64,000 bases of DNA from Bugula neritina (lineage: Eukaryota; Animalia; Bryozoa): contig OZ037769.1 of NCBI GenBank assembly GCA_964035545.1, forward strand, positions 11,748,633-11,812,632, written 5' to 3'. Numbering within the stretch: the first letter of the stretch is position 1; every line of letters begins with the position of its first letter. Below the pieces are notes generated by a model. It did no database searches and had not been told where the DNA came from. It was given only the letters and a program-made list of their open reading frames with translations. Below are positions 3,779-59,075 of the stretch, one piece after another. Position numbers and translations under genes: made by a program.

Positions 3779-3848
3779 GCTCCTGTGGTGTAATGGTAGC
3801 ACACTTGCTTGCAAGCAAGAGGACTCGGGTTCGATTCCCAGTGGGGCA
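3779..3848 (+). pseudogene. tRNA-Ala(TGC)-like pseudogene or SINE head, copy 1
   Basis: D arm gtgt-aatggta-gcac, anticodon arm cttgc-ttgcaa-gcaag (only a 6-nt loop), T loop ggttcgattcc. Acceptor and T stems are imperfect. Confidence 0.6.
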
Positions 3849-4001
3849 ATTATTTTCAAGCTATTTCGGCCTGTAGTAAAGTGTAGTAGTAGTACTCCGA
3901 GGGAATTGAGAAGCCAAGGGAGCCTGAAAACTGAATGAGTAGTAGATAGGCTAGTGGAGTTCAGAGAACTGGGTAGGATGTAGTGATGAGTTTACCCAGT
4001 G

Positions 4002-4073
4002 GCTCCCCGTGGTGTAATGGTAGCACATTTGCTTGCAAGCCAGAGGACTCGGGTTCGATTCCCAGTGGAGGCA
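4002..4073 (+). pseudogene. tRNA-Ala(TGC)-like pseudogene or SINE head, copy 2
   Basis: Near-identical to copy 1 at a spacing of ~223 bp, including ~20 bp of shared 5' flank (tgagtttacccagtg). Anticodon stem has a mismatch. Confidence 0.55.
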
Positions 4074-15990: not shown

Positions 15991-16434
15991 TAGCCTTATA
16001 TATTATGATGCTTTATTGGATTGTTTGTAGGAATACTTATTGAGAAAAGGTAAATTTATAGATAAAGTAACTCCAAATACTTAAGATGAGAAAAGCAGTC
16101 ATACATACTCTAGTGTGAGCTTCACATTTACTTGCTTTCTCTTCTTGCTTTTAAGCATTTGCTTCTATTCTCTTTACAAAGAGATCTAAAGAACAGGGTG
16201 GACATGTTGTAATATTTACACAGTTTATGTAAACTTGGAGTTACCTTTTCTTGATGTTTTAGCTGATCAATTATTATTCTGTTTTTGAAAAAGATAGTCA
16301 CTTCCTGTTTGACAAACTGCAGTGCTTGATTAAAATAAACTGAAGATTAAAACTAATCCACTAATAATTGCTAGATAAATAGACATCTAAAGAATAAAAC
16401 ATGGTGGCAGCGTAATTAATGATTAGTTTAAAAG

Positions 16435-17499
16435 ATGGAAGGCATTTCACCACCTGGACAATTGAATTTAAGGGCAGAAGATTTGTCAGGAGAATGGCGG
16501 CGTTGGATTAGGTCATTTGAGGATTATTTGCTAGCAATAGACCTAACTGCTAACTCAAGAGCCGCAGAAAAAAGGAAATTAGCCTTATTCAGACATTGTG
16601 GTGGTGAAGATGTACGTGAAATTTATTCTCAAATGGAATTTAATCTAGAGGTTAGTGGAGAAATTACTGAAATTGAGGAAGGGGTTGCTGGGAGAAAGCT
16701 AGAAGATGTAATTAAGTGTTTTCATGAGTACTGTAATCCTCGCACTAGTATTGTGCTGAATAGATTTCAATTTCACAACAGTAGCCAAAGTGGAGATACA
16801 ATAGATGTATACTTAATGAAACTGCGAAGGCTGGCGGAAGGCTGTGAATTTGGTAATCAAAGAGATTCATTGATAAGAGATAAACTGCTTTTTGGAATTG
16901 ATGATTCTAATGAAAGAGAAAAATTAATGAAAGAGGTTGATGAAAAACTAAGTTTAGACTTTGTGATTAAGTCACTGAGAGTAGCTGAGAAATCTACAAG
17001 GCCTAAAGCGATAACGCTACCAGACCCCAAACCCGAAGAAGTCAATGCAGTACAAAATGTTGATAATAGGAAGTCCAGAATTCCTTCTGAGGTTACTTAT
17101 GATAAACATTCAAAAAACCGATGTGAGCAATGTGGGAAAAGCCATTACAAAAGTCAGAGATGTCCAGCTTATGGAACTAAATGTGCGAAATGCAATCAAT
17201 TCAACCACTGGGCCAGAGTGTGTAGGAATTTGAATAAAGTCAATGAAGTACAGCCAGAAAAGGGTGACACAGATTTTTATTTAGGAGAGACACATCAGAT
17301 TAACTCCATAGATTCTCAATCCTGGTACACCAATCTCAGAGTAAGCACCAACAAACACAAAGGACAAAGGATCAAATTTAAATTAGATACTGGTGCGTCT
17401 CTTAGTGTATGTGGTCCACATCATGTCTCAGGGGAGCTAATCTCAACTAGCAAAAAATTGTTTGACAGCAAAATTTGTTTGACAAACTGCAGTGCTTGA
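16435..17499 (+). CDS. gag: Gag with double Cys/His knuckle plus truncated aspartic protease
   Basis: CEQCGKSH...CPA...CAKCNQFNHWARVC knuckles and the FKLDTGAS protease motif. The ORF runs into the internal LTR fragment and stops. Confidence 0.9.
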   Translation: MEGISPPGQLNLRAEDLSGEWRRWIRSFEDYLLAIDLTANSRAAEKRKLALFRHCGGEDVREIYSQMEFNLEVSGEITEIEEGVAGRKLEDVIKCFHEYCNPRTSIVLNRFQFHNSSQSGDTIDVYLMKLRRLAEGCEFGNQRDSLIRDKLLFGIDDSNEREKLMKEVDEKLSLDFVIKSLRVAEKSTRPKAITLPDPKPEEVNAVQNVDNRKSRIPSEVTYDKHSKNRCEQCGKSHYKSQRCPAYGTKCAKCNQFNHWARVCRNLNKVNEVQPEKGDTDFYLGETHQINSIDSQSWYTNLRVSTNKHKGQRIKFKLDTGASLSVCGPHHVSGELISTSKKLFDSKICLTNCSA

Positions 17500-17571
17500 T
17501 TAAAATAAACTGAAGATTAAAACTAATCCACTAATAATTGCTAGATAAATAGACATCTAAAGAATAAAACA
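17476..17571 (+). repeat. Internal 96-bp copy of the 3' half of the element's own LTR (approx. R-U5)
   Basis: Matches 16306-16401 and the corresponding part of the 3' LTR. Confidence 0.95.
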
Positions 17572-19895
17572 TGGTGGCAGCGGTGGGATCCGAACCCACG
17601 CCTCCGAAGAGACAATTAGCTCAATTAGGACAAGGACAAATTTTTTCCAAGATTGATGCAAACAGTGGATTTTGGCAAATTCCTTTAAGCAAAGAATCTA
17701 GCAAACTAACAACATTTCTGACTCATTCTGGACGATATCGCTATTTGCGACTGCCTCAAGGCCTATGCAGTGCTCCAGAGATTTTTGTTGCTGAAATGAA
17801 CAATATTTTGAAGGATGTTGATGGTGTGGTTATACATATGGATGACATACTGGTTTTTGGTGAGAGCAAGGAGCAACATGACACAAGATTGCAAATAGTG
17901 TTGGAAAAACTTAAAGCTTCAGGCATTACGCTCAACAAAGACAAATGTAAATTTGGAGTACCATCTGTTAATTTTCTTGGTTATGTCATAGATCAGTCTG
18001 GTATACATGTTGGCCCTCGAGTTCAAGGAATAGTAGATTTTCCTACTCCGAAAAATGTAACTTCAGTACGAAGTTTTCTTGGAATGGCCAACCAGTATGC
18101 CAAGTTTTCTGAGGAATTAGCTGCTGTGAGTGAACCAATTAGAATGCTGTTGAAGAAAGATGTTCCATGGCACTGGTCCAGCAAACAAAAAAACTCCTTC
18201 AAGAGGATAAAAGAAATATTTCAAAATGCACCAGTTCTAGCAGTCTATGATGTAGACAAAGACACCATAATCACAACAGATGCTAGCAATGCAGGTCTAG
18301 GAGCAACACTCTGTCAAATTCAACAGGATGGCTCTCGGCGCTTGATATCTGCTGCAAGTCGTTCTTTAACAGAGACCGAAAAGCGTTATGCAGCCATAGA
18401 AAAAGAAAGTTTAGCAGTCTGTTGGGCTATGGAAAAGTTTTCTCCATATATACTAGGTATGAAGAATGTGGTTATTGAAACTGATCACCGTCCACTAGTT
18501 ACTTTGTTTGGGAATATCTTTCTAGACAGGCTTCCACCAAGAATTCAAGGGTTTAAACTTAGACTTCAAAGATTTCAGTATACCATCAGACATGTGAGGG
18601 GGTCTAAGAATGTTGCAGCTGATGCTCTCTCCAGGTATAACACTGCTGAAGCAAACGAGATTGATGCAGCAAGAGAAATGGAAATTGAACTTTATATTGA
18701 TAACATCTACCAACATGGATCTGATAGCAGGTTGGAGCAGCTTCGTTTAGAACAGCATAAAGATGAAATACTGTCAAACGTAATCAAATTAGTAGAAAAT
18801 GGATGGCCAGGGTATTTGTCCACTGAAGATGTCCTTCTGAAGCCCTATTTTGAAAGAAGATCTCTATTAACAATAAACAAAGGATTCTTGACACTTGGCA
18901 ATCGTTTGGTAATACCGTTAGCTCAAAGAGAACAGGTGTTGCAAGATTTACATAGAGGACACTTGGGCATTACAAAATGTCAAGCACGGGCTAGAGATAG
19001 CGTGTGGTGGCCTTCTATGTCAAAGGCTATTGAGGCTATGATCAGCAATTGTGCTGAATGCAAAATCCATGCAGCTAAAATTACAGAGCCATTACGTCCT
19101 TCTGCAACTCCAGATAGACCTTGGCAACACCTTAGCACTGATTTGTTGACTTATAAAGGCCAAGTATATCTTCTGGTTATTGATAATTATTCAAGGTATC
19201 CTGAACTTGCCTTGCTGGGAAACTCTGACTTTTCTTCAAGTAAAGTAATAACACACCTAAAATCTATTTTTTCACGACATGGCATACCTGAAATACTATT
19301 GTCAGATAACGGCCCGCAATATGCAAGTGCAGAATTTAAACACTTTTCTGTCGAGTATGGATTTACCCATGTGACTAGCAGTCCACATTATCACAGAGCA
19401 AATGGAGCAGCTGAGCGAGGAGTAAGGACCATCAAAAGCATGCTTGCAAAAGAGAAAGATCCTTATTTGGCTTTGTTAGCCTATAGATCCTCACCGCAGT
19501 TTAGCTCATACTCTCCAGCAGAATTGTTAATGGGTAGAAAATTGAGATCCACTGTACCCATCCATCCGGATAAGCTTAAACCTGAACTCCCTGACCATGA
19601 CTTATTCAAAAGGAGCAACGATCAGTATAAAGAGAAAATGAAAGAAAATCATGACAAAAATCCTAAAGTGCGCCCTCTTTTGCCAGTAAATAAAGGAGAC
19701 AATGTGATGGTGAGAGATATGCAAAGAGAAGGCTATGCTGCCTCTTCTTCAGACAATATTACTCGTCGAACAAATGTCATGACTGACACTGGACCTTTAA
19801 TACGTAACAGAGCTGATATAACTAATATCCCAACACGATGTTCTGAGCGAACCAGAAAAGTGCCACGCTACTTAACAGATTTTGATTGTACATAA
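17571..19895 (+). CDS. pol: N-terminally truncated Pol (RT-RNase H-integrase), open 774 aa, starting at an ATG formed by the LTR/tRNA junction
   Basis: SKIDANSGFWQI, LPQGL and HMDD (RT); TTDAS...TDHRPL...ADALSR (RNase H); HxGH...CAEC and D,D(SDNGPQY),E (integrase). Confidence 0.9.
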   Translation: MVAAVGSEPTPPKRQLAQLGQGQIFSKIDANSGFWQIPLSKESSKLTTFLTHSGRYRYLRLPQGLCSAPEIFVAEMNNILKDVDGVVIHMDDILVFGESKEQHDTRLQIVLEKLKASGITLNKDKCKFGVPSVNFLGYVIDQSGIHVGPRVQGIVDFPTPKNVTSVRSFLGMANQYAKFSEELAAVSEPIRMLLKKDVPWHWSSKQKNSFKRIKEIFQNAPVLAVYDVDKDTIITTDASNAGLGATLCQIQQDGSRRLISAASRSLTETEKRYAAIEKESLAVCWAMEKFSPYILGMKNVVIETDHRPLVTLFGNIFLDRLPPRIQGFKLRLQRFQYTIRHVRGSKNVAADALSRYNTAEANEIDAAREMEIELYIDNIYQHGSDSRLEQLRLEQHKDEILSNVIKLVENGWPGYLSTEDVLLKPYFERRSLLTINKGFLTLGNRLVIPLAQREQVLQDLHRGHLGITKCQARARDSVWWPSMSKAIEAMISNCAECKIHAAKITEPLRPSATPDRPWQHLSTDLLTYKGQVYLLVIDNYSRYPELALLGNSDFSSSKVITHLKSIFSRHGIPEILLSDNGPQYASAEFKHFSVEYGFTHVTSSPHYHRANGAAERGVRTIKSMLAKEKDPYLALLAYRSSPQFSSYSPAELLMGRKLRSTVPIHPDKLKPELPDHDLFKRSNDQYKEKMKENHDKNPKVRPLLPVNKGDNVMVRDMQREGYAASSSDNITRRTNVMTDTGPLIRNRADITNIPTRCSERTRKVPRYLTDFDCT
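17572..17613 (-). other. 42-nt reverse-transcribed copy of the 3' half of mature tRNA-Leu (CCA, acceptor strand, T arm, long variable arm)
   Basis: The minus strand reads GTCTCTTCGGAGGCGTGGGTTCGGATCCCACCGCTGCCACCA, i.e. a eukaryotic tRNA-Leu 3' half plus CCA, with G in place of the invariant A58 (plus-strand C at 17590). Confidence 0.9.
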
Positions 19896-20664
19896 TTTAT
19901 TATCCACGCCTGTAATATAAGTTGCACTTGATTTAATTACTGTTGTCAAACCTTTTCTTTTGTGTGTTTTTTTTTGGTTGTTGTAGCCTGAAACTAAAGA
20001 GGGGATGTTGTAATATTTACACAGTTTATGTAAACTTGGAGTTACCTTTTCTTGATGTTTTAGCTGATCAATTATTATTCTGTTTTTGAAAAAGATAGTC
20101 ACTTCCTGTTTGACAAACTGCAGTGCTTGATTAAAATAAACTGAAGATTAAAACTAATCCACTAATAATTGCTAGATAAATAGACATCTAAAGAATAAAA
20201 CAGACACAGTTATTCATATATGAAATAAATTCTTAGAAAGGCAACACTTCAGTTACTAGTATTTCTAAAACATCTCAACATGCTGTATGGTTATTGTCCA
20301 AATGTGTCGACCATATGTAGCATGTCATATAGCTTTATTGAAGTAGCTCTTTGATCAAATAATATAATATTATTATAATGTGGTTAAAGCTAAATGCTAA
20401 ATTTTCTGTTATTACAAGAATATTGTAAAAATATATCTATTGAATATAAATTCTATTTTATTATTGTTTGATATGATTAACTGAATTTTATTAGGAAAAG
20501 AGATTAATACACAAGAAAATACATGCAGTTTCTATTGCTTGATCACATATATACAGTAGACCATTACTATATGCATATTAAGTACTATTTTTTTTAAAAC
20601 ATAGTCAATAAATTCCTCATTTGAATATCACACCCACAAAAATGAGTGCAACTCTAACGGCATT

Positions 20665-28400: not shown

Positions 28401-30246
28401 AATACTGATTCCGATAAAACAATCTCTCATATCAAGTATACACAAAGGAAGTAAGCTACTGTTCACATTACAGAGAAAAAGTGTAAGTGAATACCTGAAA
28501 TTAGTAATTCCTAGTGATTTGGTGACAGATAAAAATGATTATATGACAATCTGTGAAGTATTGTGTTATGTTCAAGACTCAAAAACAGCCTTTACGTACA
28601 TATCTGCTGGTTCAGGTGCTGATATCAGGACTGTAAGTTATAAACAGTTTGTGAAACTTATACGATTGAAATACAACATAAGCAAATCAGACTATCTAGA
28701 AGAAAAATATTTAGAAATGTGTTGTTTTTTGCTAATTATTAGTGATCATGATAGTAGTGCTATAGACTACTTGGGTGAGTTAATCAGTTATCATACAGAT
28801 AGATTTACCATACTGCATTATAAGAGGATGATAGCTGGCTGTATAAACAAGCTGAGCAAATATGAATCAGCTAGGAATTTTCTCATCCAGATAAAGTCTA
28901 TGCTAGAAGAAGAGTTTATGACAGACAAAACTACATCTCTCACTGAGCATATCCTAAGAAAGGTAGCAGCTTCCACTGAATTGCCAGAGGATATGCTATG
29001 CAAGTTTCAATTCACATCTTCTCTCTACCAATCACTAGGTGAAACAAACTATCACTCAGCCAATCTTGCTGAAGCTGAATTTTACTGGAGGCACTCTCTT
29101 TTTATTCACAGACTATTGTCAGATAAGAACTTTTCAGATAGTGCAAAAGAACAGAAGGTGATGGAATCAAAAATTTTGCGGAGCCTGGGACTTGTGCATA
29201 AACTTAAAAATGACAACAGTGCAGCATTAAAATATTTCACCAAATCAATAAAGATGACAAAAGCTGTTTATGGTGAACATACAAACAACCCTAGAATAGC
29301 TGTCAGCTATGGTGATATCGGAAATGCCCACAAACGACTAGGTAACTATGACACAGCCCTAGAATATTGCGCCAAGTCTATGGAGATGACGAAAGCTGTT
29401 TATGGTGAACATACAAACCACTCTATTATAGCCATCAGCTATGGTAATATTAGTGATGTACACAGAGAACTAGGTAACTATAACACAGCACTAGAATATT
29501 CCACAAAATCAATAGAAATGATGAAAGCTGTTTATGGTGAACATACAAACCACTCTAGGATAGCTATCAGCCATGGTAATATTGGTAGTGTGTACAAAAA
29601 AATAGGTAACTATGACACAGCACTAGAGTATTACACAAAGTCCATGGAGATGCTGAAAGCTGCTTATAGTAAAGGTTCAGCACATCCAGATCTTGTAACT
29701 GTAATCTCTTCCATAATAGACATCTATTTAGAATACAAAAGATATGAAAACTGTTTGCCCCTTTGTTATGCTCCTGTATTGAGTAATTAATGTCTGTCTA
29801 AAGTCCTCAACAGAATATCTGCGGATTACATCAGATCATCAAACTACAGAAGAGCTGCTCAGTTTCTGCAGATTGCTATTTCTAAAGCTGCTGATCATAG
29901 CATGCAGCAGGCTCACAACTACCACCAGATGGGTAGATGTTACATGCTGATGTCATCATACAAGAAGAGTTGGTGTTGGTTGTACTCTGCTCTTTGTCTG
30001 TATCAGTCCTTTTCTAAAACCAGAGAAGTCATTTTGTCTCTTGGTAACGTTCACATGTCCATATCCCATCTACTTCTACTCACTGGTCATGTGACTCAGT
30101 CTCTTGAACATTGTCAAAGATCTCTTGACTACTTTAACAATTTTTCTGGTGTCCAAACAAACCCTGCTGTCAAAAATTTAAAGACACACCTTCTACAACT
30201 CACTGAGTCTTTGCACCTTTTTAAAATCTTAACTAATCACTTCTAA
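25434..30246 (+). pseudogene. Nucleotidyltransferase-TPR gene copy A, join(25434..25523,27112..30246), two in-frame nonsense codons
   Basis: Exon MEEYIAELES...DYVK with a phase-0 GT donor at 25524 and an AG acceptor ending at 27111. LGSVARGEATPYSDLE NTase motif. Stops TAG 28171-28173 (Trp in copy B) and TAA 29788-29790 (Gln in copy B), with no frameshifts. Four repeat linkers at 132-nt spacing (29269, 29401, 29533, 29665). Probable 5'UTR exon at ~24917-25010. Confidence 0.85.
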
Positions 30247-36451: not shown

Positions 36452-39400
36452 ATGGAGGATTACATTGCTGAATTAGAGTCACTTTTAGCAAAACACTTGG
36501 AAGAAGCAGAAACAACAGAAAACTGGGTTGACTATGTCAAGGTAAATATAGATATTGTAGTTGAATGAAATTGTCGTTATATAGATACTTATTATATATA
36601 GTATGATTTGGTTCTGAAAGATATTGCAATTAACTGTATAATTATGACTGAAATTTAGAATTATAACATAGTTATAATTAATAAATATATTACTTAGACT
36701 TTTCTGTAGACATAAACAAGTTTTGTGTAATATGAAATAGTTGCAGCAGAATTAATACCTTTCATAGCTCCATTAGATACAAGTAAAGTATCTCCATGCA
36801 CTCCTACAAGTCTCTAGTATTTGTTTTATAAAAGACAAAACTGCTTTTAAATTAGAGCAGCCTAATTTTATCACTAAACTAAAACATATTCCGTAAAAAA
36901 ACTAAACATACTCTTCAAATTCTTTTGTGTGAAATTTTGGTAAACTAAATAACACAAAATAAGAAACCTCAGTACAAAAACACAGAAGATTAATTCTCGA
37001 ACATTGTCTTACTGATGCCATGATGCATATAAATAAGTAGATATTATAGTAAAGATTTTTGGGGCCATTTAACACATCAAAAAAGTAATTCCATAGAATC
37101 TCTATAGCCTTTTATAAAATATTGTGAAACTAAGTATTAATAATAATTGATATTTGTGACATTTGTGATAAATTGTCTTCAGTCACATGGAGTTTCATTA
37201 TTGAACTGAGCTGCGCGCATGCCATATATAGGCAGTTGTTGTAAGGTCATTTCATGTATATATCAGAGTTACCGACTCAGAGGTCTCTTCTGAGTAGAAA
37301 ATTCTGAGTACATTAACAAGCACATTAATTCACACTCATGAGTGAATGAATGTAAATGTGAATTTTAGAGATGTCAGTGTGGGATATACATCAAACTAGG
37401 GTATGATTAGAGTTTTTCAGTTGCTAACATGTTTTGAAAACATGGTTAAACTGTAGTTGAGATACAGTCAGTTAACAGCAGTAGTATAAAAACTTTAAAA
37501 TGCAAGCAGCTCAGTCCTGCAGATGTATTAGCAATTCGTATATTGAAAAAAGATGGTGACTGTAGGAGTTGTTGGAAATTGACACTTGCATGTAGTGTGA
37601 GAGAGCAAGGTTGCTGTTGCACAGTGATAGTCACTTCAATATCAATTTCAAAAACAAATTTATAATACTTGAAATTAAAAAATTGAGCAAGTTACAACAA
37701 CATTAACATAATACATGTAATAAACATTAGAAAATACGAAATATACTGAGTCGAACATATATAAAAGGAGGAGAGCTACCAAATTTAAACAATAATTGAA
37801 TAATGATAATTCAGCACAACAAAGGGTAAAATATAAATTTACAGTAGCTGTAACGAAATTGGTGATCTCAGCCTATCAAAGTTTTGCGCAAATTATAGTA
37901 ATTCAAGATTAAAATAACACTTGTAATGGATTTTGCATGTACTTGTTTCCGGTTGCCGAGATCGACATTTCGGGCTACCGAAAGCCCGAAGTGCCGAAAT
38001 TCGGTGTTTCGGACCTCCGATCTCGGCAACAAAGGGAAAGCACTGTATCTTGTTGTATATAAAAGCCAGCGAGCTCCAGTGTAGTTCAGTCTACTACTGG
38101 AGCTCACTGGCAGAGGACCTTCACTATATTATATCATTCGATTAAATAAAGATTTCTTCACCTTTACAATACATCTTGTTCTCTCTAACAAAGAGTATGT
38201 TCAGGCACTAGTTCTATTCAACCCACAAAAATATCACATTGGTGGCAGCGGTGGGATTTTGAATAACTAGTTCCCAAAGGGGAACGAGATGGCTCCGCCA
38301 GGGGAAACAGCCCCTGGGGCAACGGAGACGGAGACACCAACCCTCACGGTAGAGGCTTTGGTTGCAGCCCTCCAGGGATTGCGGGAGCCAAGTCAGGCGC
38401 CACCTGGTGACAGGTACCGCCTCAAGCTCCCGAATTCCGGAGGGGAGGAGGATGTGGAGCAGTTCATCCGCGAGTTCGAAGATGTGGCCACCATCGCTGA
38501 ATAGCCAGCCCCGGTGCGCATACTTCAACTCCGGTCCTGTTTGACAGGCCAGGCGAAGAGCTTTGCTCTTAGGCCTGATGAAGCCCATATCCTGCGGGCC
38601 CTCAGGGCCCGATTCGGCCGGACATCCGAAGAGGCTGTGGATCGCCTACAGGCACTGAGGCGAAACCGCAAGACGACGTTAGAAGAGCATGCCAACACGG
38701 TGGAACGGTTGGCCCAGGCTGCTTACAGCCACGCCACAGGTACAGAGAGGAAGCGCCTGGTGTACAACGCATTCTTTAAAAGCGTCAACGACTCTGGCCT
38801 GCAGCGCTACTGGCTGGCCGCCAAAGTTCGCACCTTGAAAGAAGCCCTGGAGATGGGCAAGTCATATTTCCAGGTGGAAGGGCTCCAAAAGAGGAGCTTC
38901 ACCGCACACCAGGTAGCCGAGGGGAACCCAGAGGACGCCACACCCGTAACTCCACAAGTGTCGGCAGCAACGACTCCGTCGCCAGAACAGGCGCAGCTCG
39001 CCGTGTTAGTAGACATGATGAAGGGTCTACAGGCTACGGTAACCGAACTACAACAAAACCAGGCGGATAGGCGGGCTCCCTGAATATGGGACGACCCTGT
39101 CCGCCCCTCGCAGCTTACCTGCTGCGGATGTGGAGCGTCTGGGCATGTGAAGAGACATTGCCCCAAAGGTAGCTTGCCTTTAAACAACCAAGGCTCACAG
39201 TAACTTCCGCCGACCGTGGGCCCCCAGCCAACCCCATTCGGGGGAGGGGTCAGGGAATGACCAAGAAGACCCCTACAGCGTCTGACGAGATGGGATGGCA
39301 GAGACCTCGGAGATCTCGGAAACCAAAAGGTTTACCCGATCCTCCGGTCATGCCACTCAACACCCGGATGGAGTCAGAAGACGTAGGATGGCAGGCACCT

Positions 39401-42400
39401 CGGAGATCTCGGAGACCGCAAGGTCTACCCGATCCTCCGGCCTGGCCACTCCATAACCGGTTCGCGGGGTTGCCCGAGGAAGTCAAGGAGGAGGACTCAG
39501 CTTACTCGCAAGAGTACCCCAAGCTGCCCTCCCGACCTCAGAAAACCCCCGTTGTCTCTAAGACAACGAGGAGGCCCGCTGTGCGGACCCAAGTTGTGTC
39601 TCTCCCAGAGACTAACCGCTCCGGGAGCACCCAACCGTATGGAAGCAGCTACTTCCTACCCGGAAAAATTTCGGGTAAAGCTGCCACATTCCTACTGGAC
39701 ACTGTGTGCACTACAAATCTGCTGAGTAGGTGTCTCTTTGACACTCTTGGTGCCCGAGAGCGGGCGAGCCTCGAGCCGTATGAAGGTGCGCGGACGGATC
39801 ATGCATTCCCTTCTACGGCATCCTTTCACTGCCTGGACGCATCCGTGATCAAGCAATTTACGGGACGTTCATAGTCAGCCAGCTGAAGGAGGACGCCATC
39901 CTGGGAATGCCGTTTCTGGAGAAACACCAGTGTCACATGGATTTCCAGAAGTCAGTGGTGGTAATGGCTGAGAAGGAACTTGTCTGTGTTGACAAGTTCG
40001 CCAGGCCCTTGGTGGGCGGAGTCCAGGTAGTGCGGGACTGCACAGTTCCGGGAAGATCCCAGGCGACTCTTCGCTGCAGAGTCAACTGCAAGGAGATCGC
40101 TGACCTGGGGGTGGTTGAGGGAACGCACGGAGCGATCCGACTAGCAAACAGCCTGAATCGGCTAGACTGTCGGCAAGAGCTCCTCGTGCAGTGTATCAAC
40201 CCCTTCACGGAACCTGTCCGATTATCGGCCGGAGCGCTGGTGGGGAAGTACCACTCCATCCAGGACGCGGATGTGGGTCCGGCACTGGAAACAGTGGCCG
40301 ATACCCAGGGAAACCCCCCTCGCACCAGCCAAAGAGCAGTCCCGGAGCATATGGCTGACCTGTACGATGGAGCGTGCGGCAACTGTACGAGTAGTACTGA
40401 ACGCCAAGTACTGGCTCAACTACTCGCGGAGTACAGTGATGTCTTCAGTCGTGGTGATGAAGACATGGGGCTGACTAAGGTTATCTCTCACAAGATACCC
40501 CTGGCAGCCGGCACCACTCCCATCAGGCAGCCCACCCGGCGTCTAGGCCCGGAGAAAGAGAAGGAGATGAGCCGACAGGTGCAAGATCTTCTCGACCGGG
40601 ATCTGATTGAGCCTGCCCACGGTGCGTGGAGCTCTCCAGTAGTCCTGGTCAAGAAGAAGGACGGTAGCTGGAGGTTCTGTGTGGACTACCGCAGACTCAA
40701 CAGCGTTACCATCTAAGACGCCTACCCTCTCCCACGGATAGATGAGTCTCTGGATGCCCTCGCGGGTAGCAAGTACTTCAGTACTTTGGATCTGCTTAGC
40801 GGGTACTGGCAAGTGCCCCTCAGTCCTGATGCCCAGGGCAAAGCAGCATTTATTACTCGCGACGGGCTCTGGAAGTGGAAAGTACTGCCATTTGGACTAA
40901 CGTCCGCCCCGGCAACTTTCCAACGGCTCATGGAGCAGGTCCTCAGTGGATTACACTGGAAGACCTTCCTCATCTATCTGGACGACGTCATTGTCATCTC
41001 CCCAAACTTTTCGACTCATGTCAGTCGTCTGCGGGAGGTCTTTGACTGTCTCCGGGCAGCTGGACTGAAGCTGAAGCCCTCCAAATGTGCACTCCTGCAG
41101 CCGGAAGTCACGTACCTTGGCCATGTGGTTGGCCGGGATGGGGTCGCTACTGACCCAGAGAAGGTACAGGCTGTGAAGGAGTGGGCTGTCCCCCGTGACC
41201 TCCCTGAGTTGCGCGCATTCCTGGGCCTAGTAGGGTACTACCGGCAGTACATACCTGGCTTCGCAGGAGTGGCTCAGCCGTTAAACCGGCTGACCGCAAA
41301 GGGGGTCCAGTGGCAGTGGACGCAGGAGGAGCAGCAAGCATTTGACCACCTCAAGCAACAGCTAATGGAGGCGCCAATTTTGGCGTATCCTGATCCAGCC
41401 AAGGAGTACATCCTGGACACCGACGCCAGCGACCACAGCGTGGGAGCTGTCCTGTCTCAAGTCCAGGGTGGAAGTGAGGTGGTCATGGCTTACTACAGCA
41501 AGACTCTCGCGGCCGCCGAGAAGAACTACTGCACCACTAGGAAGGAACTCCTAGCAGTAGTCAAGGCGGTCAAGCACTTTTGGCCATATCTGTATGGGAG
41601 AACGTTCCGTTTGCGAACAGACCATGCATCACTGATATGGTTGTGTAAACGTGCAGAGCCCTCGAGCCAGGTAGCTTGTTGGCTAGAGATTCTTGCTGAG
41701 TTTTCTTACCGGATAGAGCACCGTGCTGGCCGGAAGCACGGGAACGCCGACGGCATGAGCCGCCGGCCGGTAGAGGACTGTAAGCAATGCCTGCACATTG
41801 AAAAGCGGGACGGGGGACCCGCTCGCCTTGACGTGGAAACAGAGTTAGAGGAAGGCGCCGTCTACCGGTGGGAGCACGGCCATCTTCGGCCCAAAACCTA
41901 CTCAGACGACGTCCAGGCGCTCCACGCCAACCCCACTCTGTACCAGAATGTCAAGGAGCTGTGCCGACTCCAGGAGACGCTACCCGGCGCGGTAGCAGAC
42001 ATTTTCCAGGCCAAGAAGGAGGGCGGACGACCTAGCGAGGAACAGCAGCGGCAGGGAGACGTTGAGTTCCAACTTCTCTGTCGTCGCTGGGATGCCCTCA
42101 AGGTCAGTCCTGATGGCCTCCTGATGATAGCGTTAGCAGCAGACAACCGTCAACAGGAGAGGGACCGCGTCTTCTGCCCACGCGCCCTCCGACGGGAACT
42201 GATCTGGGACACCCATAAGCAGGCTCATTCTGGAGTCAGTCGGGTCATCAGGTGTCTGCGGCTGCGTTGGTATTGACCCAGAATGACTCGGGACGTACGA
42301 CTGCGGGTACGGCAATGCGAGGTCTGCTAAGCTAGAAAGCATGGCCGCCCCACGGAAACCACTGGTTGACGCCGGCTGTGCGCTGGTCGACCATGGCGGT

Positions 42401-45400
42401 AGACCTCGTCGGGCCTATGCTGTTATCCGCCAGAGGGAACACCTGGATACTAGTGCTCATGGACCACTTTACCCGGTGGGCAGATGCTCTGGCTATTCCA
42501 GACGCAACAGCCCCCACGGTGGCCCGGATCCTGGACCAACATGTGTTCTGTTACCTCGGTTTACCCGAGCAGATACATACGGACCAGGGTGCCCAGTTCC
42601 AGTCCCAGCTCATGGGAGACCTCTGCCGGATATGGGGGGTGAACCAGAGTCGGACCACCCCATATCACCCGCAAGGGAACGGAGTCGTCGAACGGAATAG
42701 CAAGATGTTGGGTGACGCCCTCAGGAGCCTGCTCCTTGGTCGAGGTCAGGAAGAATGGGACGTGGTGCTGCCGCAAATCATGCGGGCTTACCGCAGCACA
42801 CCACACAGGAGACCCCAAAATTCCTGATGCTAGGCCGAAAGACGCGGGTTCCGGAACACCTAACATACCATGTTCCTGCCCCCGAGTTACCGGTACACGA
42901 ATACGTGGAGGGTCTGATAGACATCATGAGCAAAGCTCATGATGCACTGCATACCCAACAGTAGCAGACCCGCACAGAGGACTCAGAGGAGCCCCCGTTG
43001 TACCAGGTGGGAGACTGGGTCTGGATGGTGAGCTACCATAGGCGACGCAAACAGTGGGCTAAACTTCAGCCCAAGTTCGTCGGTCCCTACTGCGTAGTGG
43101 AGGTGCTGCCCAACCACACGTACCGTGTGGAGCGCTCTGGACAGGTCTCGCCTGAAGCCGTACCATGCCAGCCCGGACGCAGTGGGTCAGGCCCCACCCC
43201 TCTTGGAGCACGTGAACAGGCCGCTCTACTGGAACGGCAACAGACAGGGGCAACAATTACCACCATCACAGGCCTCGGAGGTACCGCCCCAACTGGAAAG
43301 AGGCGTCCTCGCCCATAACACTGATGACAACAGGACCCCTCCTGTTACAGTAGTCGAAGAATCGCAAGCCCTGACAGAACCCATTCAACTTGAGAGAAGC
43401 CAGAGAGACAGAAGACCCCCCAGATACTTAGCAGATTATGCAGTAGGACGCCTTGAAGTACCCCCTCGTAGTCTTAGCTCTCATATTTCCATATACTATC
43501 CTACCTTGAGTGACGATTCCCTCAAAGACTCACAAAAATTTTACCAACAGATGAAAAACTCAGACCGAAATTTGGTGGGCACGCGATTACCTGAGTTATC
43601 ATTTCAAAATTTGATGGGAATTCCCACGGGTCACGTGGCCATCGCCGCTGCAGGTAATAATTTTAAAACACGGGGCTCGGCCATTATTACTACAGCCATC
43701 GCACAAGCAACACGCAATTTAGAAATTAAAATTCAAAATTTGAATTCTGATTTTAAACTACAATCGAACTCTAACTCAAACATGGACTCCACACTCGTCG
43801 AATCTACTAACATCACCACAGGTATTCCTTTACGGTTACAACCTCCACAAACGGAGTCTAACCAAACTAATGTTGATTGGAGTTTGTTAGATTCTCTAGA
43901 ATCTGACTTATTAGAGCCAGATACCGAGATGGATCTGGAAGGTGACCCTGTCCACGATTTCTTGTTGGACCAAGACGTGGGTTTGGTCACACTTTCAGAC
44001 TCATCTCGGCCCCCAGTATGTAGCTTAGTACCGTATAAGAGTATGCCGAATTCGGCGATAGAGAGATCGGCTTGTCACAGCCTCTTCTATCTGTTGTAGG
44101 AAATAGTATGGTGGGGTCGAGTTGTACCAACTCCCCCCTTCCCTGGCCCCTGTTCCGGCTCTCAGCAGCCAACAGGGCGCCACTCCACCGACAGGGATGC
44201 CTCCCACCACCGTCAGTGTCCCTGGGTCTAACCCGGTCGAGCTCCAACTCTCGGCCGGGAAAGAACTGGGCATACTGCTCGGTGGGGAACCCACGGAGAG
44301 AGATGATGACTCCCAGATACTGGCCTTGCCTCGGGCCTTGGTCGCCCGCCAGTACTGGATCTCCCGAGGGACCAACTTAAAAATTGGTCAGACGTGCGGC
44401 GAGCCGGGCAACCGCATCTGCCAGCAGTGTCGGAGGAAGTTTTCCTCCACACGGCGGCTGCGAGTTCACGCCCCGCAGCATTACATTAACGTATTCTGCT
44501 CGTGTGGCGAATTCTCTTATCAGCGCAATTACGTGCTGAGGCACCAGCGCATCTCGCGCTGCCACACGGGCCACACGTTTGCAGTGGACCAGGCCAGTTT
44601 CCTCGAATTCCGGGACCTGGTGCTGCCCCACGTTGCGGACCCCCGCAAACGGGCTACCCTTGCCCAAGAGTTTCCCGCATGCCGCCCAATCAGGGAGGTA
44701 GAGGAGGAGCCCGTCGCGACGCCTCAACCAGCGGCCACCCAGCCACTTCGGGTCGTGCTGGCACGGGTCGAAGGAGGCAGGTCCGCGTCCCCGGGCCTGA
44801 GCCAGCGACCCTCGGCGACGGGAAGAAGAGGACAGCCCCAGCGTAGCGTCACCAGCCACGCTGCATCCCTGCCACTGGAGGAGGAGGTCCGGTCCCTGCG
44901 CCGGCGCCTGAGATGATACGAGGACGAGTTAGGAGAGCTGAGACGACGAGTGAGCCGTCTGGAGCGGGCGCGCGATACCGACCAACAATAGGGCCGTTCT
45001 TTATATTGACATTGGTGGAGGGAGCATGTTTATTTTATTGCTTCGCATGATATTACTTTTGTTTATTGTTTTGCATGATATTACTTTTGTTTATTACTTA
45101 CATGATATTAAAGCTTATGTGTCGCATGCTGTTGATTGTTTTTTTACCTGACATATCATTTCTTGTGTTGTCCCCAACGTTGCTTCATTTTGTTTTTTTT
45201 GTTTTGTTGTTGCTAAAATCACATTTCCTCTTATCGGAAAGTATGCTTTCTGATGGGGGGTGTGTGTAATGGATTTGGCATGTACTTGTTTCCGGTTGCC
45301 GAGATCGGCATTTCGGCTTTCCAAAATGCCGAAATACCGAAAATCGGCATTTCGGGCTACCGAAAGCCCGAAGTGCCGAAATTCGGTGTTTCGGACTGCT

Positions 45401-48400
45401 GAAATGCCGAAATTCGGCGTTTTGGACGCCTGAAATGCCGAAGTTCGGCATTTCGGACCTCCGATCTCGGCAACAAAGGGAAAGCACTGTATCTTGTTGT
45501 ATATAAAAGCCAGCGAGCTCCAGTGTAGTTCAGTCTACTACTGGAGCTCACTGGCAGAGGACGTTCACTATATTATATCATTCGATTAAATAAAGATTTC
45601 TTCACCTTTACAATACATCTTGTTCTCTCTAACAAAGAGTATGTTCAGGCACTAGTTCTATTCAACCCACAAAAATATCACACACTAAAGTGAGCTGAAA
45701 TCTTTTTTATTTTACTCACTGTTCTGTTATCAACTTGACACTGTTAATGTTTAAGGAAGTTTATATTAGAAAACTCATTAGTTAAACTTAAGATTTATCT
45801 TTTACAGCAGTTTATAAGTGTAAATATAAGCAGTTGTCTCTCCTTTGTGATGTAGAGTCATGGAATAGCAAACCACCTGCAAACCGTAGATTCACAAAAC
45901 AGTCAGAGATACGAACAAGTCTATGAAATAGAAAACAAATGGTACAAAGGAAAACATCCGCTCACTTTTACAGAACATCAAGAATTTACAAGACAACATA
46001 AACAACAACTGAAAAAATATCGAGAGAATACAATCATTAACTTTGACAGTTTGAATAGTGATGTACAGTTGTTGGACATAGACAATGTGTTTAGTGATGC
46101 TAATTTAGAAATATCTCATCAGTTGTCTAATAATGTATTTGCGAGCAGTGAGAAGTGTTCCAAAAAATTTTTAGAGTTTTCTAGATCAATAATTAGATCA
46201 AGTACAGAGTTGCTTAAAAGGTGTCAAGTAGAGCCACCCTGTAATTTTGCTGTAGTTGCACTGGGCTCAGCAGCTCGTAGTGAGGCAACTCCGTATTCTG
46301 ACCTTGAATATGCATTTCTCATTGAAAATGAGGATGAGAAAGATTATTTCACTCAACTGGCTGTTGAGACATATTTTAGAATAACGAACCTCAATGAGTC
46401 TCCATTGAAAACCTTTGAAATTAAACTTAAAAACTCTCCTGACTGTCTCAGTGAGAGCTATTCAGTAGGATATAGAATAGATGGTCTTGCACCAAATGCT
46501 GGTAACATACCAACAGGAAATGGATTGGGTGAATGTCTCACTTTCACAGTTGAACAAGCAGTGAAACTGTACAAAGAGAAAGTGATGTCACCATCTGAAA
46601 AACTAGCAAGTCTTTCAGATCTGCTCATTACATCACAGTTGATATACTGTTCTGATGATGGAGCACAGTTACATGGCAGGTTTATGGAAGAAATAGCTAC
46701 ATATGAAAAATTTACAGCTCAGAATGATTATCAAATCAAACGGAAGAGGTTGGAAAGAGTTTCTCTAGATTTACAGAAATATGATTTTCTCCCAGAATTT
46801 GAATTTAAAACTGCTGGTGAAGATGTGAAGGTAAAAGAAGACATTTTCCGTTATATCACTCTTTTGGCTACTAATCTAAACATTGGCCTGTGTTTTCTAC
46901 TGAACTTTCCATGGAAGGTGTATGAGGCACTTTGCCAGTCAGGGATAATTTCTAAAGATAGCCTGAGATACCTTCACATTATCTTGGGACTCTCAATATA
47001 CATGAGAACTATGGCATACACCACTATGGGAACTCAAAAAGCTGAAATCCTGCTAAGTACTCCAACAGCTGAAATAAAAAATGAAAATAAAAAAGTTAAA
47101 CATTACTATGTGCCTAGACAGATATTTGTGATGTTTGGCTCAATACTAATTCCAATAAAACAATCCCTCGTATTAAGTATGCGCAACGGACATCGGCTAC
47201 TGTCAGCATTAAATGAGAAGAGTGTGAGTGAATACTTAAACTCAGTGATTCCCAGTGATTTGGTGACAGATAAAAATAATTATATGACAACATGTGAAGT
47301 ATTGTGTTACGTTGAAGACTTAAACACAGCCCTAAAGTGCATATCTACCGGTTCAGGTGTTGATATTAGAAGTGTAGGATACGAAGAGTTTGTGAAACAT
47401 ATACGAGCAAAATATAACACAAACAAGTCAGACTATCTAGAGCAAAAGTATCTAAAAATGTGCTGCTATTTGCTGATTACCAGTGAGTGTGATAATAGTG
47501 CCATTGAGTACTTGAGCTGGTTAATTAGTTATGAGAAAAGTTGCCATGGTGTAATGCTTTATAAAAAACTGATAGCTGACTGTATGAATAGGTTGAGCAG
47601 ATATAAATCTGCTAGGAGTATTCTCATTCAAATAAAGTTTGCACTAGAAGAGCTCATGATTATAGAGACAGACAAATCTCTTACTGAGTACATACTAAGA
47701 AAAGTAGAAGTTTCTACTAACTTGCCCGAATACCTGCTAAATCTGTTTCGATTCACATCAGATCTCTTGCACTCACTGGGTGTAACTAATACTCACTTAT
47801 CAAATCTAGCTGAAGCTGAATATTACCTGATGCAGTCTCTGGATATGCACAGAGTATTATGTGACAAAATGTTTTTCCATGATGCAAGTGGACACAAACT
47901 AGTTGAATCAAGGATTTTAAACAGCTTAGGAATTGTACATGAAAACAGGAGTAAAAACAGTAGAGCCTTAGAGTGTTTCACTAAATCTCTAGAACTGATA
48001 AAATCAGTTTATGGTGAACATGCGAACCACTTTACCATAGCTATTAGCTATGGTAAAATTGGTGATGTACACTCTGAGTTAAGTAATTATGACACAGCAC
48101 TAAAATTTTACACTATGTCAATGGAGATGATGAAGGCAGTTTATGGTGAACATACAAACCATTCTACTATGGCTGTCACCTATAACAATATTGGTGATGT
48201 ACAAAAGTACTTAGGTAACTACAACAGAGCACTAGAATACTATACCAAGTCAACAGAGATGATGAAAGCTGTCTATGGTGAAAATGCAAACCACTCTAGT
48301 ATAGCAATCAGCTATAATAACATTGGTGATGTACAAAAACAATTAGGCAACTATGATGTAGCTCTAGAATTTTACATCAAATCAATGAAGAAGAAAAAAG

Positions 48401-49647
48401 ATCTTTATGGTGAGCATACAAAACACCCCAGTATAGCTATTAGCTATAGTAAAGCTGGTGATGTACATACCAAACTTGGCAATTATGATGCAGCGCTTGA
48501 GCATTACACAGAATCAATGGAGATGTTGAAGGCTGTTCATGGTGAACATACAAACCACTCTAGTATAGCAATCAGCTATGGTAATATTGGTAATGTACAC
48601 AAACAACTAGATAACTATGACACGGCACTAGAATACTACACCAAGTCTTTGGCAATGGAAAAAGCTGTTTATGGTGACCATGAAAGTCACTCTAGTATAG
48701 CTATTAGCTATAATAACATTGGTGATGTACACAAAAAACTAGGTAACTATGACACAGCCCTAAAATACTATACAGAGTCAATTAACATGAAAAAAACTGT
48801 GTATGGACAACATACCAACCATCCCAGTATAGCTATCTGCTATGGTAATATTGGCAACGTACATAAACAACTAGCTAACTATGACACAGCACTAGGCTAT
48901 TATGCTATGTCAATGAAGATGATGAAAGCTGTTTATGGTGAACATACAGTTCACCCTGACATAGCTACAAGCTATGGTAGAATTGGTGCCGTACACAAAC
49001 ATCTATGTAACTATGACACAGCACTAGAACATTACACCAAGTCAATTGAAATGCTAAAAGCTGTCTATGGTGAAAGTTCGGCACATCCTAATCTTGCAGA
49101 TGCAATCTCTTCTATAATAGACATTTATCTAGAATTCAACAGATATGAAGACTGTCTGTTCCTTTGCGATACTCCTGTAGTGAGTAATCAATGTCTGTCC
49201 AAAGTCCTCAACAAAATATCAGCAAATTGCATCAGATCATCAAACTACAGAAGAGCTGCTCAGTTTCTGCAGATTGCTATTTCTAAAGCTGCTGATCATA
49301 GCATGCAGCAGGCTGACAACTACCACCAGATGGGTAAATGTTACATGCTCATGTCATCATACCAGAAGAGTTGGTGTTGGTTGTACTCTGCTCTCTGTCT
49401 GTATCAGTCCTTTCCGAAAACCAGAGAGGTCATTTTTTTTCTTGGTAACGTTCACATGTCCATATCTCATCTACATCTACACACTGGTCATGTGATTCAG
49501 TCCCTTGAACATTGTCAAAGATCTCTTGACTACTTTAACAATTTTTCTGGTGTCAAAACAAACTCTGATGTCAAAAATTTAAAGACACACCTTCTACAAC
49601 TCACTGAGTCTTTGCATCTTGTTAAAATCTTAACAAATCACTTCTAA
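36452..49647 (+). CDS. Nucleotidyltransferase-TPR protein copy B, join(36452..36541,45856..49647), ~1293 aa: Pol-beta-fold NTase (GlnD/GlnE/DUF294-like), helical region, array of 44-aa TPR repeats
   Basis: Same exon structure as copy A with a phase-0 intron, and the frame is open from 45856. LGSAARSEATPYSDLE (hGS-x10-DhE) plus GYRIDG. Nine repeat linkers at 132-nt spacing (48010-49066), consensus YGEHTNHSSIAISYGNIGDVHKxLGNYDTALEYYTKSMEMMKAV. Confidence 0.9.
38289..39203 (+). pseudogene. gag: gag of element 2 with CCHC knuckle; stops at 38502 and 39081
   Basis: Homologous to the gag of element 3 (RYRLKLPNSGGEEDVEQFIREF). CCGCGASGHVKRHC knuckle. Ends LNNQGSQ*. Confidence 0.85.
39179..39212 (+). 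promoter_or_regulatory. Programmed -1 ribosomal frameshift site (T TTA AAC plus downstream stem)
   Basis: Heptamer TTTAAAC (39179-39185) in X_XXY_YYZ phase of gag. The -1 frame is open into the pol ORF at 39257. A stem ggctcac/gtgggcc starts 6 nt downstream. Confidence 0.7.
39257..43200 (+). pseudogene. pol: pol of element 2 (PR-RT-RNaseH-IN) with frameshifts and stops
   Basis: LLDTVCT (degenerate protease), WRFCVDYRRLN, YLDD, DTDAS, TDHASL, HTDQGAQF, VERN. Stops at 40714, 42274, 42328 and 42962, plus frameshifts. Confidence 0.9.
44108..44991 (+). CDS. Accessory 3' ORF of element 2: two C2H2-like zinc fingers and a C-terminal coiled coil (one internal stop at 44914)
   Basis: CQQCRRKFSSTRRLRVHAPQH and FCSCGEFSYQRNYVLRH...CH, then LEEEVRSLRRRLR*YEDELGELRRRVSRLE heptads. 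Homologous to the ORF in element 3. Confidence 0.65.
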
Positions 49648-54358: not shown

Positions 54359-55458
54359 TTTGTAATCAAAGTATAATAGACGGCAGCTCCAAGCTGCCCC
54401 CCCCGTGACCTCCTACCACCCCTGCGTCACACCAAGTGCCACCTCGACTTGCCCCACGCAAGCCAACGCAGTTTGGCTTTCCAAACTGCCAAGCAGTATA
54501 CACTGACGACTACACTAGTAGCCACCCTACCAGTAACACTTTACTGGTAGGCAACTAAACTGAAAACTACAAATGAGAACGACTAACACTAACTAGGCTA
54601 TTAATGTACACGAAGAAATAACTACCTACTAATAATACCAAATAAATATAACAATATAACTATTCTAATAAATGACAAGACTGAATAATAATATTAGGGC
54701 AAACCACACGTCCTTCACTGAGCAATAGCAATTTTGAAGTGCCCGTGAGTAATGCAACATGGCTGCTCAACCGGAACATGCAAATAGCGTGGTCGGTCCG
54801 AGAGGACAACTCACAGACATTAGCTATTGTAGAATTTATACATAAACTGTAGGTAAATGACATCATATTAATCCAAATAAGACTTACAAAATTGATGCAC
54901 AGATAAGATATCTTTTGTCATCCAAAATGTCAAAACCAGTGGTCTAGATCAAGAGTGTAAATGTAAGGGTATGAAATTGTGTGTTCAAATAATATTGTAG
55001 CAGATGTAGTGAGCCTTCAGTTGAAAGAGGGAAGTTAATAAATGTTCCTCTGCGACTGTTTGTTCTGAACGCACTGTCTGTTGTAATGGGATTACGTAGC
55101 ATAATAATGCATTTGTCCCCTCCTGTTTGGGAATACTTATAACTATGTTTTACTATCCAATCAGAAGGACCGAAAGACAAGGTTCCGGTCAAGTGACTGT
55201 TCGCGGGTTAGCTAGCAGAAACCATGTTGTTGAGAGCAGGGGCTCGTAGTAGCTAGACGTGTTTATAATTGATTGATGTATTGTGGTTTTGACATACTGT
55301 TATAATTATGTTTATCGAATTGAATAAAGGTTATCGTACGCAAGCTCTGTTAGTAGTTGCTAGTTAAATTGAAACTAAATACGCAGGCAATCCACGCTTG
55401 ATAATTGTGCTAGAACTCACAACAGTGGTGGCAGCGGTGGGATTTCGCGTATTTAAAG

Positions 55459-57987: not shown

Positions 57988-58210
57988 AGGCAAAGTGCAG
58001 AAAGACCCGGGCAGACGGAGACTGCTAACCTGGTCGACAAACCGCCTAGTATGCAACCCAAAGCAGTGGTGAGGCAGGAAAAGCCACACCCGTTCAGGGA
58101 AGTGCGCTCACCGCCGTTAGCATGCAAGCCGCCACCGCCACTTCCTAGGTCAGGAACCGACCTGGAAGTGCAAAAACCCCCCAAGGGAGGGGCTCCGTGC
58201 GGAGGTACTG

Positions 58211-58430
58211 GGAAAGCTCCATTTGGCACAAATTGGCTGGAAGCACCACCTGTGAGATGTGACCGTCCACGGGCGCGTAAACCACCATGGCTGGAGACAA
58301 CACTTCCCCAGGCTCCGAACGGAGATGCTAGGAAAGCTCCATTTGTCACAAACTGGCTGGAGGCACCACCCAAGCGACCTGACCGTCCACGGGTGCGTAA
58401 ACCGCCTTGGTTAGTGACGACACCTGGGAA
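58211..58430 (+). repeat. 120-bp tandem duplication in element 3 (KAPFxTNWLEAPP...RKPPWL x2)
   Basis: ggaaagctccattt at 58211 and 58331. Confidence 0.8.
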
Positions 58431-59075
58431 ACGGTGTCCTAAGCCAGGCCCCGCGTATCGCAAGGACTTACCACGTTCCGTTAAGGGCGCGGTCAAACGT
58501 CCTACGAGACGCCGTGAGGGGAAAGGAGCAGAGCCTGGGAGTTGTGAGCACCACGAAAATATCAACTTTCGCCTCGGCGGAAATTCAAATAAGATTCATA
58601 CGCCGGAGGTAATAAGTCATAGTCACGTTTCACAACCACGCTGCTCGCTCTTTCACCACATTAATACAGCTTTGAGTAGACGTACGTAGAATTCATAAAC
58701 ATACCACTCTCATTCACAATGGCTTGCCAAGAATCGAGGGGTGAGTTAGTTATGTTTTTGATACGAGAACTAAACTGTATTAATCAGCTTAACTATAATA
58801 GAGTAAGCTGGAGACTCGGTAATGATTTTTAGTGGTGAGAATTCACATTGACTCTAAGACTTAACAGTCTGTTACAGCAGTGTGTGTTTTCGATCAACTA
58901 TTCGTTAACTGAGTCTCACGAGTGTCTAATTGAGTTAAGTACCCACCAGGCTGGATACGCCGGTTGTACTCAGTGTACCCTCTCACACTGTTATACTCTT
59001 GCAGATCACACTCGATCGACCAACTCTGGGTCACAGGACCTACACTCTCTCTCCTCCTTGGATAACAGACCGGAA

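Follow-up and report, generated by a model that had tools for sequence, protein, structure and literature searches.

How does a retrotransposon come to carry, inside its own pol region, the end of its long terminal repeat (LTR) followed by a long complement of a transfer RNA? This question is raised by element 1, an LTR retrotransposon at positions 16205-20202 of the window, by which we mean the whole analysed stretch of 64,000 nucleotides (G000:C5:11748633-11812632) of the 216-Mb genome of the bryozoan Bugula neritina. Unless stated otherwise, positions are those of the window. The answer which we consider probable is that the defect of element 1 was made by its own reverse transcription: the reverse transcriptase (RT) would have read through the 1-methyladenosine at position 58 (m1A58) of the primer tRNA, misincorporated a nucleotide opposite it, and recombined into pol within the same replication cycle. 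The framework of the element is given by the following features.

16201-16204, plus strand: target-site duplication GACA, left copy; it recurs as the 4 nt past the 3' LTR
16205-16401, plus strand: 5' LTR, 197 bp with TG...CA ends, letter-identical to 20006-20202
16402-16412, plus strand: native primer-binding site (PBS), whose 11 nt are the complement of the CCA-bearing 3' end of tRNA-Leu(AAG)
16435-17499, plus strand: truncated gag-protease frame of 354 amino acids with a CCHC knuckle, which enters the insert and stops there
17386-17394, plus strand: protease D-T-G
17616-19895, plus strand: remaining pol, i.e. RT from position 59 of the Pfam profile RVT_1 on, RNase H and integrase (Pfam scan; collinear with intact copies)
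19996-20005, plus strand: polypurine tract, a purine run adjoining the 3' LTR
20006-20202, plus strand: 3' LTR
20203-20206, plus strand: target-site duplication GACA, right copy

The two LTRs are direct repeats with TG...CA ends, agree in 197 of 197 nt and are flanked by GACA on both sides; the PBS beside the 5' LTR and the purine tract beside the 3' LTR are both present. An intact relative possesses a single frame of 1197 amino acids with the Pfam order RVT_1, RT_RNaseH_2, Integrase_H2C2, rve, which is also found in element 1. Because the integrase follows the RT in the frame of the intact relative, the family is a Ty3/gypsy family. With Ty3/gypsy elements (Metaviridae), element 1 has in common the TG...CA LTRs, a 4-bp target duplication, a tRNA PBS and a polypurine tract, as well as the succession of gag knuckle, protease, RT, RNase H, and integrase. 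Unlike the norm of this group, it is missing the protease end as well as positions 1-58 of the RT profile and can therefore not supply its own enzymes. Copies of the family make up well below 0.1% of the genome. Genome-wide, the other copies found show a tRNA match of just 10-11 nt after the LTR, and every match to the family's 5' LTR ends at the point of the PBS (16402-16412).

What replaced the missing part of pol became clear from a comparison with seven intact relatives, which are 98.3-99.6% identical to element 1; these copy alignments served solely for mapping and for counting differences. According to BLAST and direct comparison, collinearity breaks at 17461 and restarts at 17616. Between these breakpoints, the relatives have 509 bp comprising the protease end and the RT start, whereas element 1 has 154 bp; the net change of -355 bp breaks the reading frame. 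The deletion begins 22 codons past the protease D-T-G and takes the RT through Pfam profile position 58. The 154 bp consist of the following pieces.

17462-17475, plus strand: filler of 14 nt at the left junction (comparison of five intact copies and the LTR)
17476-17571, plus strand: internal copy of the element's own last 96 LTR nucleotides, an exact match to 16306-16401
17572-17613, plus strand: 42-nt complement of mature tRNA-Leu(AAG), matching four genes plus CCA in 41 of 42 letters
17590, plus strand: the single mismatch, a C for the expected T, at base 19 of the copy and opposite tRNA position 58
17614-17615, plus strand: AA filler at the right junction

At the left junction, the filler and its flanks form an imperfect 17-nt duplication (17449-17466 versus 17467-17483), which is a template-switch stutter, and the letters TGT are common to pol and the LTR. 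At the right junction, the heptamer CAATTAG occurs twice (17612-17618 and 17622-17628); the two letters AA may instead belong to this repeat, in which case a short stutter is possible on this side, too. The 96-nt LTR copy starts 6 nt past an initiator-like TCACTTC and 28 nt upstream of an AATAAA, which accordingly lies 28 nt inside the copy. Judged from these motifs, the piece probably corresponds to the repeat and unique 5' regions (R-U5) of the LTR, i.e. the part held in minus-strand strong-stop DNA. It continues into the tRNA complement without a spacer, just as the 5' LTR continues into the native PBS. What precedes the tRNA copy is not a whole LTR including the unique 3' region (U3-R-U5) but the final 96 of its 197 nucleotides. 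The insert is either part of an over-extended plus-strand strong-stop DNA or a copy of minus-strand strong-stop DNA together with its primer. A second locus joining the LTR of element 1 to a long tRNA copy was not found in the 216-Mb genome.

The source of the 42 letters can be named precisely. The genome contains four identical tRNA-Leu(AAG) genes, and relatives of these at 89%, 87%, and 82-83% identity. Compared with the complement of tRNA-Leu(AAG) plus CCA, 41 of the 42 letters match, and the copy spans the CCA, the discriminator, the 3' strand of the acceptor, the T arm, and the variable arm up to G43. Downstream of the four genes, the sequence reads TATC or AAAT and never CCA; as the CCA is present in the copy but encoded by none of the genes, the template was the mature RNA. 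With 42 nt, the copy reaches beyond tRNA position 59 (i.e. it exceeds 18 nt) and is 31 nt longer than the PBS of the family. Because the latter has just 11 nt, letters 12-42 do not stem from the RNA of the element. On the coding strand, the LTR end comes first and the tRNA complement second; this is the polarity of plus-strand DNA that has been copied from a minus strand still tipped with its primer.

The sole mismatch of the copy faces A58, the fifth base of the T loop. All four tRNA-Leu(AAG) genes and the 89%-identical relative possess A58, and a tRNA-Leu gene with G58 was not found in the genome when up to 3 mismatches were allowed. Element 1 is young: among the three LTR pieces (197 + 197 + 96 = 490 letters) there is no difference, and outside the insert 8 substitutions are private to element 1 in comparison with the seven relatives, counted over about 3,620 aligned columns. 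(Seemingly private sites inside 17462-17615 are an alignment artefact and lie outside the count of 8.) Ordinary change thus amounts to at most about 0.2% per site, an upper bound which takes in changes predating the insertion; a lone hit at position 58 is therefore improbable by chance. In terms of the tRNA itself, the mismatch reads as a G in place of the A. The signature which m1A leaves in reverse transcription depends on the base 3' of it, and an m1A followed by A is read as G or T and rarely as C (PMC4787781). Here, too, an A follows position 58, and the observed G fits this m1A-A spectrum, which was measured with a different enzyme. We infer that the C was misincorporated opposite a methylated A58. 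As in tRNA sequencing, the mismatch is located exactly at position 58 and has the expected identity G; there, however, the signature is a laboratory readout obtained with commercial enzymes, whereas in element 1 the element's own RT would have acted and the record is genomic DNA.

On these points, the initial annotation proved accurate. It had described a protease broken by the element's own LTR end of 96 nt, the 42-mer, and then RT sequence, all of which the map against the seven relatives places where it had been read. The 42-mer had been taken for the complement of mature tRNA-Leu including the CCA, extending beyond the native 11-nt PBS, and the match of 41 out of 42 to genes which lack the CCA agrees with this. 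The C at 17590 (base 19, opposite A58) is indeed the only departure from the four tRNA-Leu(AAG) genes, which together with the 89%-identical relative passed the proposed check for A58; the genomic tRNA-Leu with G58, named as an observation that would speak against the idea, was searched for and did not turn up. Likewise, the argument that identical LTRs speak against later decay is borne out by the counts: the 490 LTR letters show no difference, and about 3,620 other columns contain 8 private substitutions.

Is a stop at m1A58 to be expected in this animal? GCD14/TRMT61A is the catalytic subunit of the tRNA m1A58 methyltransferase, and a homologue is located at G000:C9:314989-319549 on the minus strand, in four pieces which cover profile positions 1-186; a weaker second match lies at C1:12116172. 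A pattern search revealed at least 275 LTR copies from many families that carry an exact 18-nt tRNA-Leu PBS and diverge right after letter 18, a number which counts just the half of the cases ending in G or C. To judge by this number, priming by tRNA-Leu(AAG) seems to be very common among the LTR elements of this genome. A PBS of 18 nt is the product of a stop before position 58 (PMC13191261), and a shared length of exactly 18 nt is thus the classic mark of this stop. The window itself contains two further LTR elements. That at 37969-45682 is older, with LTRs of about 95% identity and a GC-rich interior; its 18-nt tRNA-Leu PBS (38240-38257) is followed by TTTTGAA, a CpG-decayed version of the TTTCGAA of its family. 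The third, at 55082-60261, has LTRs of about 98% identity and an 18-nt tRNA-Leu PBS (55426-55443) followed by TTCGCG.

The sequence of events which would lead to the present structure of element 1 can be outlined as follows. Plus-strand DNA would have copied a minus strand that still bore the tRNA-Leu(AAG) primer at its 5' end. Normally, synthesis would halt at m1A58 after 18 tRNA letters; here it would not have halted, and a C would have been placed opposite m1A58. After this, the T arm and the variable arm would have been copied as far as G43, from where the growing strand would have switched to minus-strand DNA in the RT-coding region. R-U5 would have been joined to the protease region at the TGT microhomology, with a stutter; for this left join, two routes are conceivable, since either minus-strand strong-stop DNA entered pol rather than reaching the 3' R, or the plus strand switched templates. 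Finally, the rearranged DNA, lacking 509 bp of protease and RT, would have been inserted by the integrase, which would have produced the GACA duplication. The most economical path would begin with strong-stop DNA entering pol at TGT together with its primer. Having arrived at the tRNA, the plus strand would find no PBS partner for its transfer; it would stall, cross m1A58 with a misincorporation, reach G43 and then continue on the other minus strand, at a point 509 nt farther downstream. If the plus strand had simply switched templates twice, the product would be the same. 

With respect to these steps, the initial annotation can be followed with minor corrections. Its deletion of the protease-RT junction by template switching agrees with the mapped loss of 509 bp, with the TGT microhomology and with the stutter, but the right side is not the clean jump it had assumed, given the 2-nt filler or the repeated CAATTAG. 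Its claim that the RT read past m1A58 with misincorporation is backed by the CCA and by the polarity, length, and uniqueness of the copy; for the presence of m1A58 and the order of the template switches, it relied on inference, as do we.

Element 1 is not the only locus with a long tRNA copy. Two others, L075 (the same as L043; G000:C3:16535015, plus strand) and L083 (G000:C4:21273636, minus strand), carry CCA plus 47 nt of the same tRNA-Leu(AAG). They belong to an older LTR family of about 170 bp and, judged by eye, seem to have the whole LTR; such a shape would be that of a full plus-strand strong-stop DNA which has run on to the next hard stop. The remaining members of their family are solo LTRs or have the normal 18-nt PBS. 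The match to the tRNA is 41 of 47 in L075 and 42 of 47 in L083, and the mismatches of L083 are all C to T or G to A, three of the five being located at CpG sites. Both copies end opposite C38, one base short of G37, which is the expected site of a second hard-stop methylation, m1G37. Downstream, the two loci continue with unrelated sequences; in L075, a host gene of SNF2 type follows at a distance of about 300 bp. Copying past position 58 therefore recurs in this genome and tends to end at the expected m1G37. Opposite position 58 there is an A in L075 and a T in L083, and both copies are too old to inform on this position itself. For a while, L075 was regarded as a second clean m1A58 footprint; this candidate was withdrawn, as it is an old copy with six mismatches in 47 letters.

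Several explanations compete with read-through of a methylated primer, and some observations weigh against the latter. There is a single event with a single mismatch, so that the argument is a statistical one; the methylation of A58 on tRNA-Leu(AAG) of Bugula neritina is presumed; and L083, with its faithful T opposite A58, indicates that read-through is not always accompanied by a mismatch. Moreover, the base at 17590 and the junctions are known from the assembly alone, which makes a base-call error possible. The last two observations lend themselves to the view that the primer was indeed copied past position 58, the C at 17590 being unrelated to a modification: it could go back to an ordinary slip of the polymerase, to a mutation arising later in the germline or to a wrong base call, and the tRNA could have lacked m1A58. 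Substitutions are most often of the T-to-C kind. Unmethylated primers are copied through position 58 (PMC8599865, PMC13191261). On the other hand, ordinary change is limited to about 0.2% per site, a single hit in 42 letters has a 1/42 chance of falling on position 58, and 17590 lies outside any homopolymer run; altogether, we regard this view as rather unlikely. A G58 or an inosine at position 58 would yield a C without any misincorporation, and the primer might accordingly have been a variant or edited tRNA-Leu, encoded by an unassembled G58 gene or carrying inosine. We know of no inosine at position 58 in eukaryotic cytosolic tRNAs, which counts against this proposal, as do the failure to find a G58 gene in the genome at up to 3 mismatches and the pairing of A58 with T54 in almost all tRNAs; it is very improbable.

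Other objections concern the way in which the pieces were joined. The end of the copy at G43 lies 6 nt before the expected next hard stop G37, and the end point therefore has to be explained by the template switch alone, which also speaks against the proposed course of events. The same is true of the junctions, because stutters and short fillers are typical of end-joining repair by the host, too. It might be that a U5-tRNA piece made by RT entered an intact element after the latter had integrated, through break repair by the host, i.e. by microhomology-mediated end joining with templated fillers. The 3-nt microhomology, the imperfect local duplication and the 2-nt filler are traits of this kind. 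However, given that the family occupies well below 0.1% of the genome, it would take a great coincidence for the piece to land in one of the family's own members and in matching orientation, and the inserted piece is identical to element 1's own LTRs. We consider such a repair event unlikely; it would leave the interpretation of the tRNA copy and of position 58 unchanged. Lastly, repeats are a frequent source of misassembly, and the locus might be an assembly chimera or the result of DNA recombination with a tRNA gene or with an LTR family having a long PBS. But the join of this LTR end to CCA and T arm exists nowhere else in the genome and was therefore not stitched together from other loci; in addition, CCA is not encoded by the tRNA genes and no family member has a PBS longer than 11 nt. 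This origin is hardly credible. All in all, read-through of m1A58 followed by recombination into pol accounts best for element 1.

If the methylated base is crossed more often, traces might also be expected just past the 18-nt PBS of other elements. The letters after the PBS vary in several families: in one of them, we counted TC 17, CT 15, CC 8, AC 1, and CA 1; in a second AA 5, CA 1, TA 1, AT 1, and ATTA 1; in a third TTT 24, TT 4, TTA 3, and CTA 1, followed by CGAA. For these tallies, an exact match was demanded over the next 14-15 letters, and the counts were made by hand from the matches of a pattern search. The variation possibly reflects a hotspot opposite m1A58. Within close families, PBS position 19 is invariant (T in 7 of 7 copies of family A, C in 8 of 8 of A2 and in 4 of 4 of B), and in the largest family all 37 copies have an A; any hotspot is therefore family-specific and not general. 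A match to CGAA or CG after one or two extra letters, seen in some families, may be due to chance and was not relied on. A related observation concerns the loci L073 and L074 (G000:C3:10045953 and 10054772, minus strand), which have their PBS sites in the same orientation, with 8.8 kb between them. A comparison of the flanks gave 10 differences in 823 positions, and PBS position 19 (G versus T) is among these; the two may be tandem elements sharing an LTR.

Apart from the LTR elements, the window contains two adjacent tRNA genes on the plus strand (3779-3848 and 4001-4073), namely tRNA-Cys(GCA) and one without a clear anticodon call. It also harbors large dispersed duplications, in which 25.4-31.2 kb corresponds to 36.4-37.4 kb and 45.8-50.6 kb at 73-96% identity. 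The spacings are about 11.0 kb and 18.7-19.4 kb, and a 132-bp tandem array is included (29193-29756, 47934-49157).

How does element 1 compare with known systems? In retroviruses, the stop at m1A58 is accompanied by minor longer products, which end at positions 55, 54, and 37 (PMC13191261, PMC8599865), and the stop is lost when the methyltransferase is mutated (PMC8599865, PMC13191261). The plus-strand strong-stop DNA of HIV-1, primed by tRNA-Lys3, resembles the insert of element 1 in that the LTR end is followed by a copy of the primer's 3' end, with the stop due after 18 nt. The longer retroviral products were observed in vitro or in infected cells, whereas element 1 is a germline-fixed Ty3/gypsy copy of a bryozoan; furthermore, its tRNA copy is located inside pol, has 42 nt and contains a mismatch at position 58. 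Retroviral DNA to which a reverse-transcribed tRNA is attached at a deletion has been described as well; the cases, which are summarized in PMC12220202, comprise a circle of Moloney murine leukemia virus (MLV) that has a tRNA inserted between its LTRs, hairpin-induced tRNA-mediated recombination in HIV-1, and a copy of tRNA-Gly beside deleted HIV proviruses. Such aberrant DNAs share with element 1 the reverse-transcribed mature tRNA with its CCA, the junction to viral DNA, and the deletions. They differ in that other or spurious tRNAs were copied nearly whole, in laboratory infections and somatic cells, and the texts consulted mention no signature of a modified base. No earlier description of a mismatch at a modification site in a germline retrotransposon copy turned up in the literature searched, the coverage of which is incomplete.

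Copying past the tRNA stop is thus already known from retroviruses, and element 1 is a clear natural example of it, a feature which is neat but expected. Germline DNA has here kept the trace of an uncommon error of reverse transcription and, probably, that of m1A58 itself. The m1A58 stop is textbook knowledge, but this knowledge is based on test-tube and cell-culture work with a few retroviruses; the locus of element 1 is a natural and datable germline example from a distant animal lineage. Here, failure of the stop would have led to 24 more letters, an error at the methylated base, an illegitimate rescue by template switching, and a dead element. As a more far-reaching idea, which we put forward only tentatively and rather doubt, the RTs of LTR elements in this animal might cross the m1A58 of their tRNA-Leu primer often enough to leave heritable marks in the germline. 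These would be one-off fossils, such as element 1 and the two older 47-nt copies, and a hotspot of mutation and insertion just past the 18-nt PBS in several families. If this were true, genomes could serve as natural archives in which tRNA modification and the behavior of RT in vivo are recorded. A cheap survey suggests itself: at each LTR end that continues into CCA and a tRNA stretch exceeding 18 letters, the nucleotides facing positions 58 and 37 would indicate the rate and the errors of crossing. Such a survey could show whether tRNA modifications are readable from DNA in species without RNA data.

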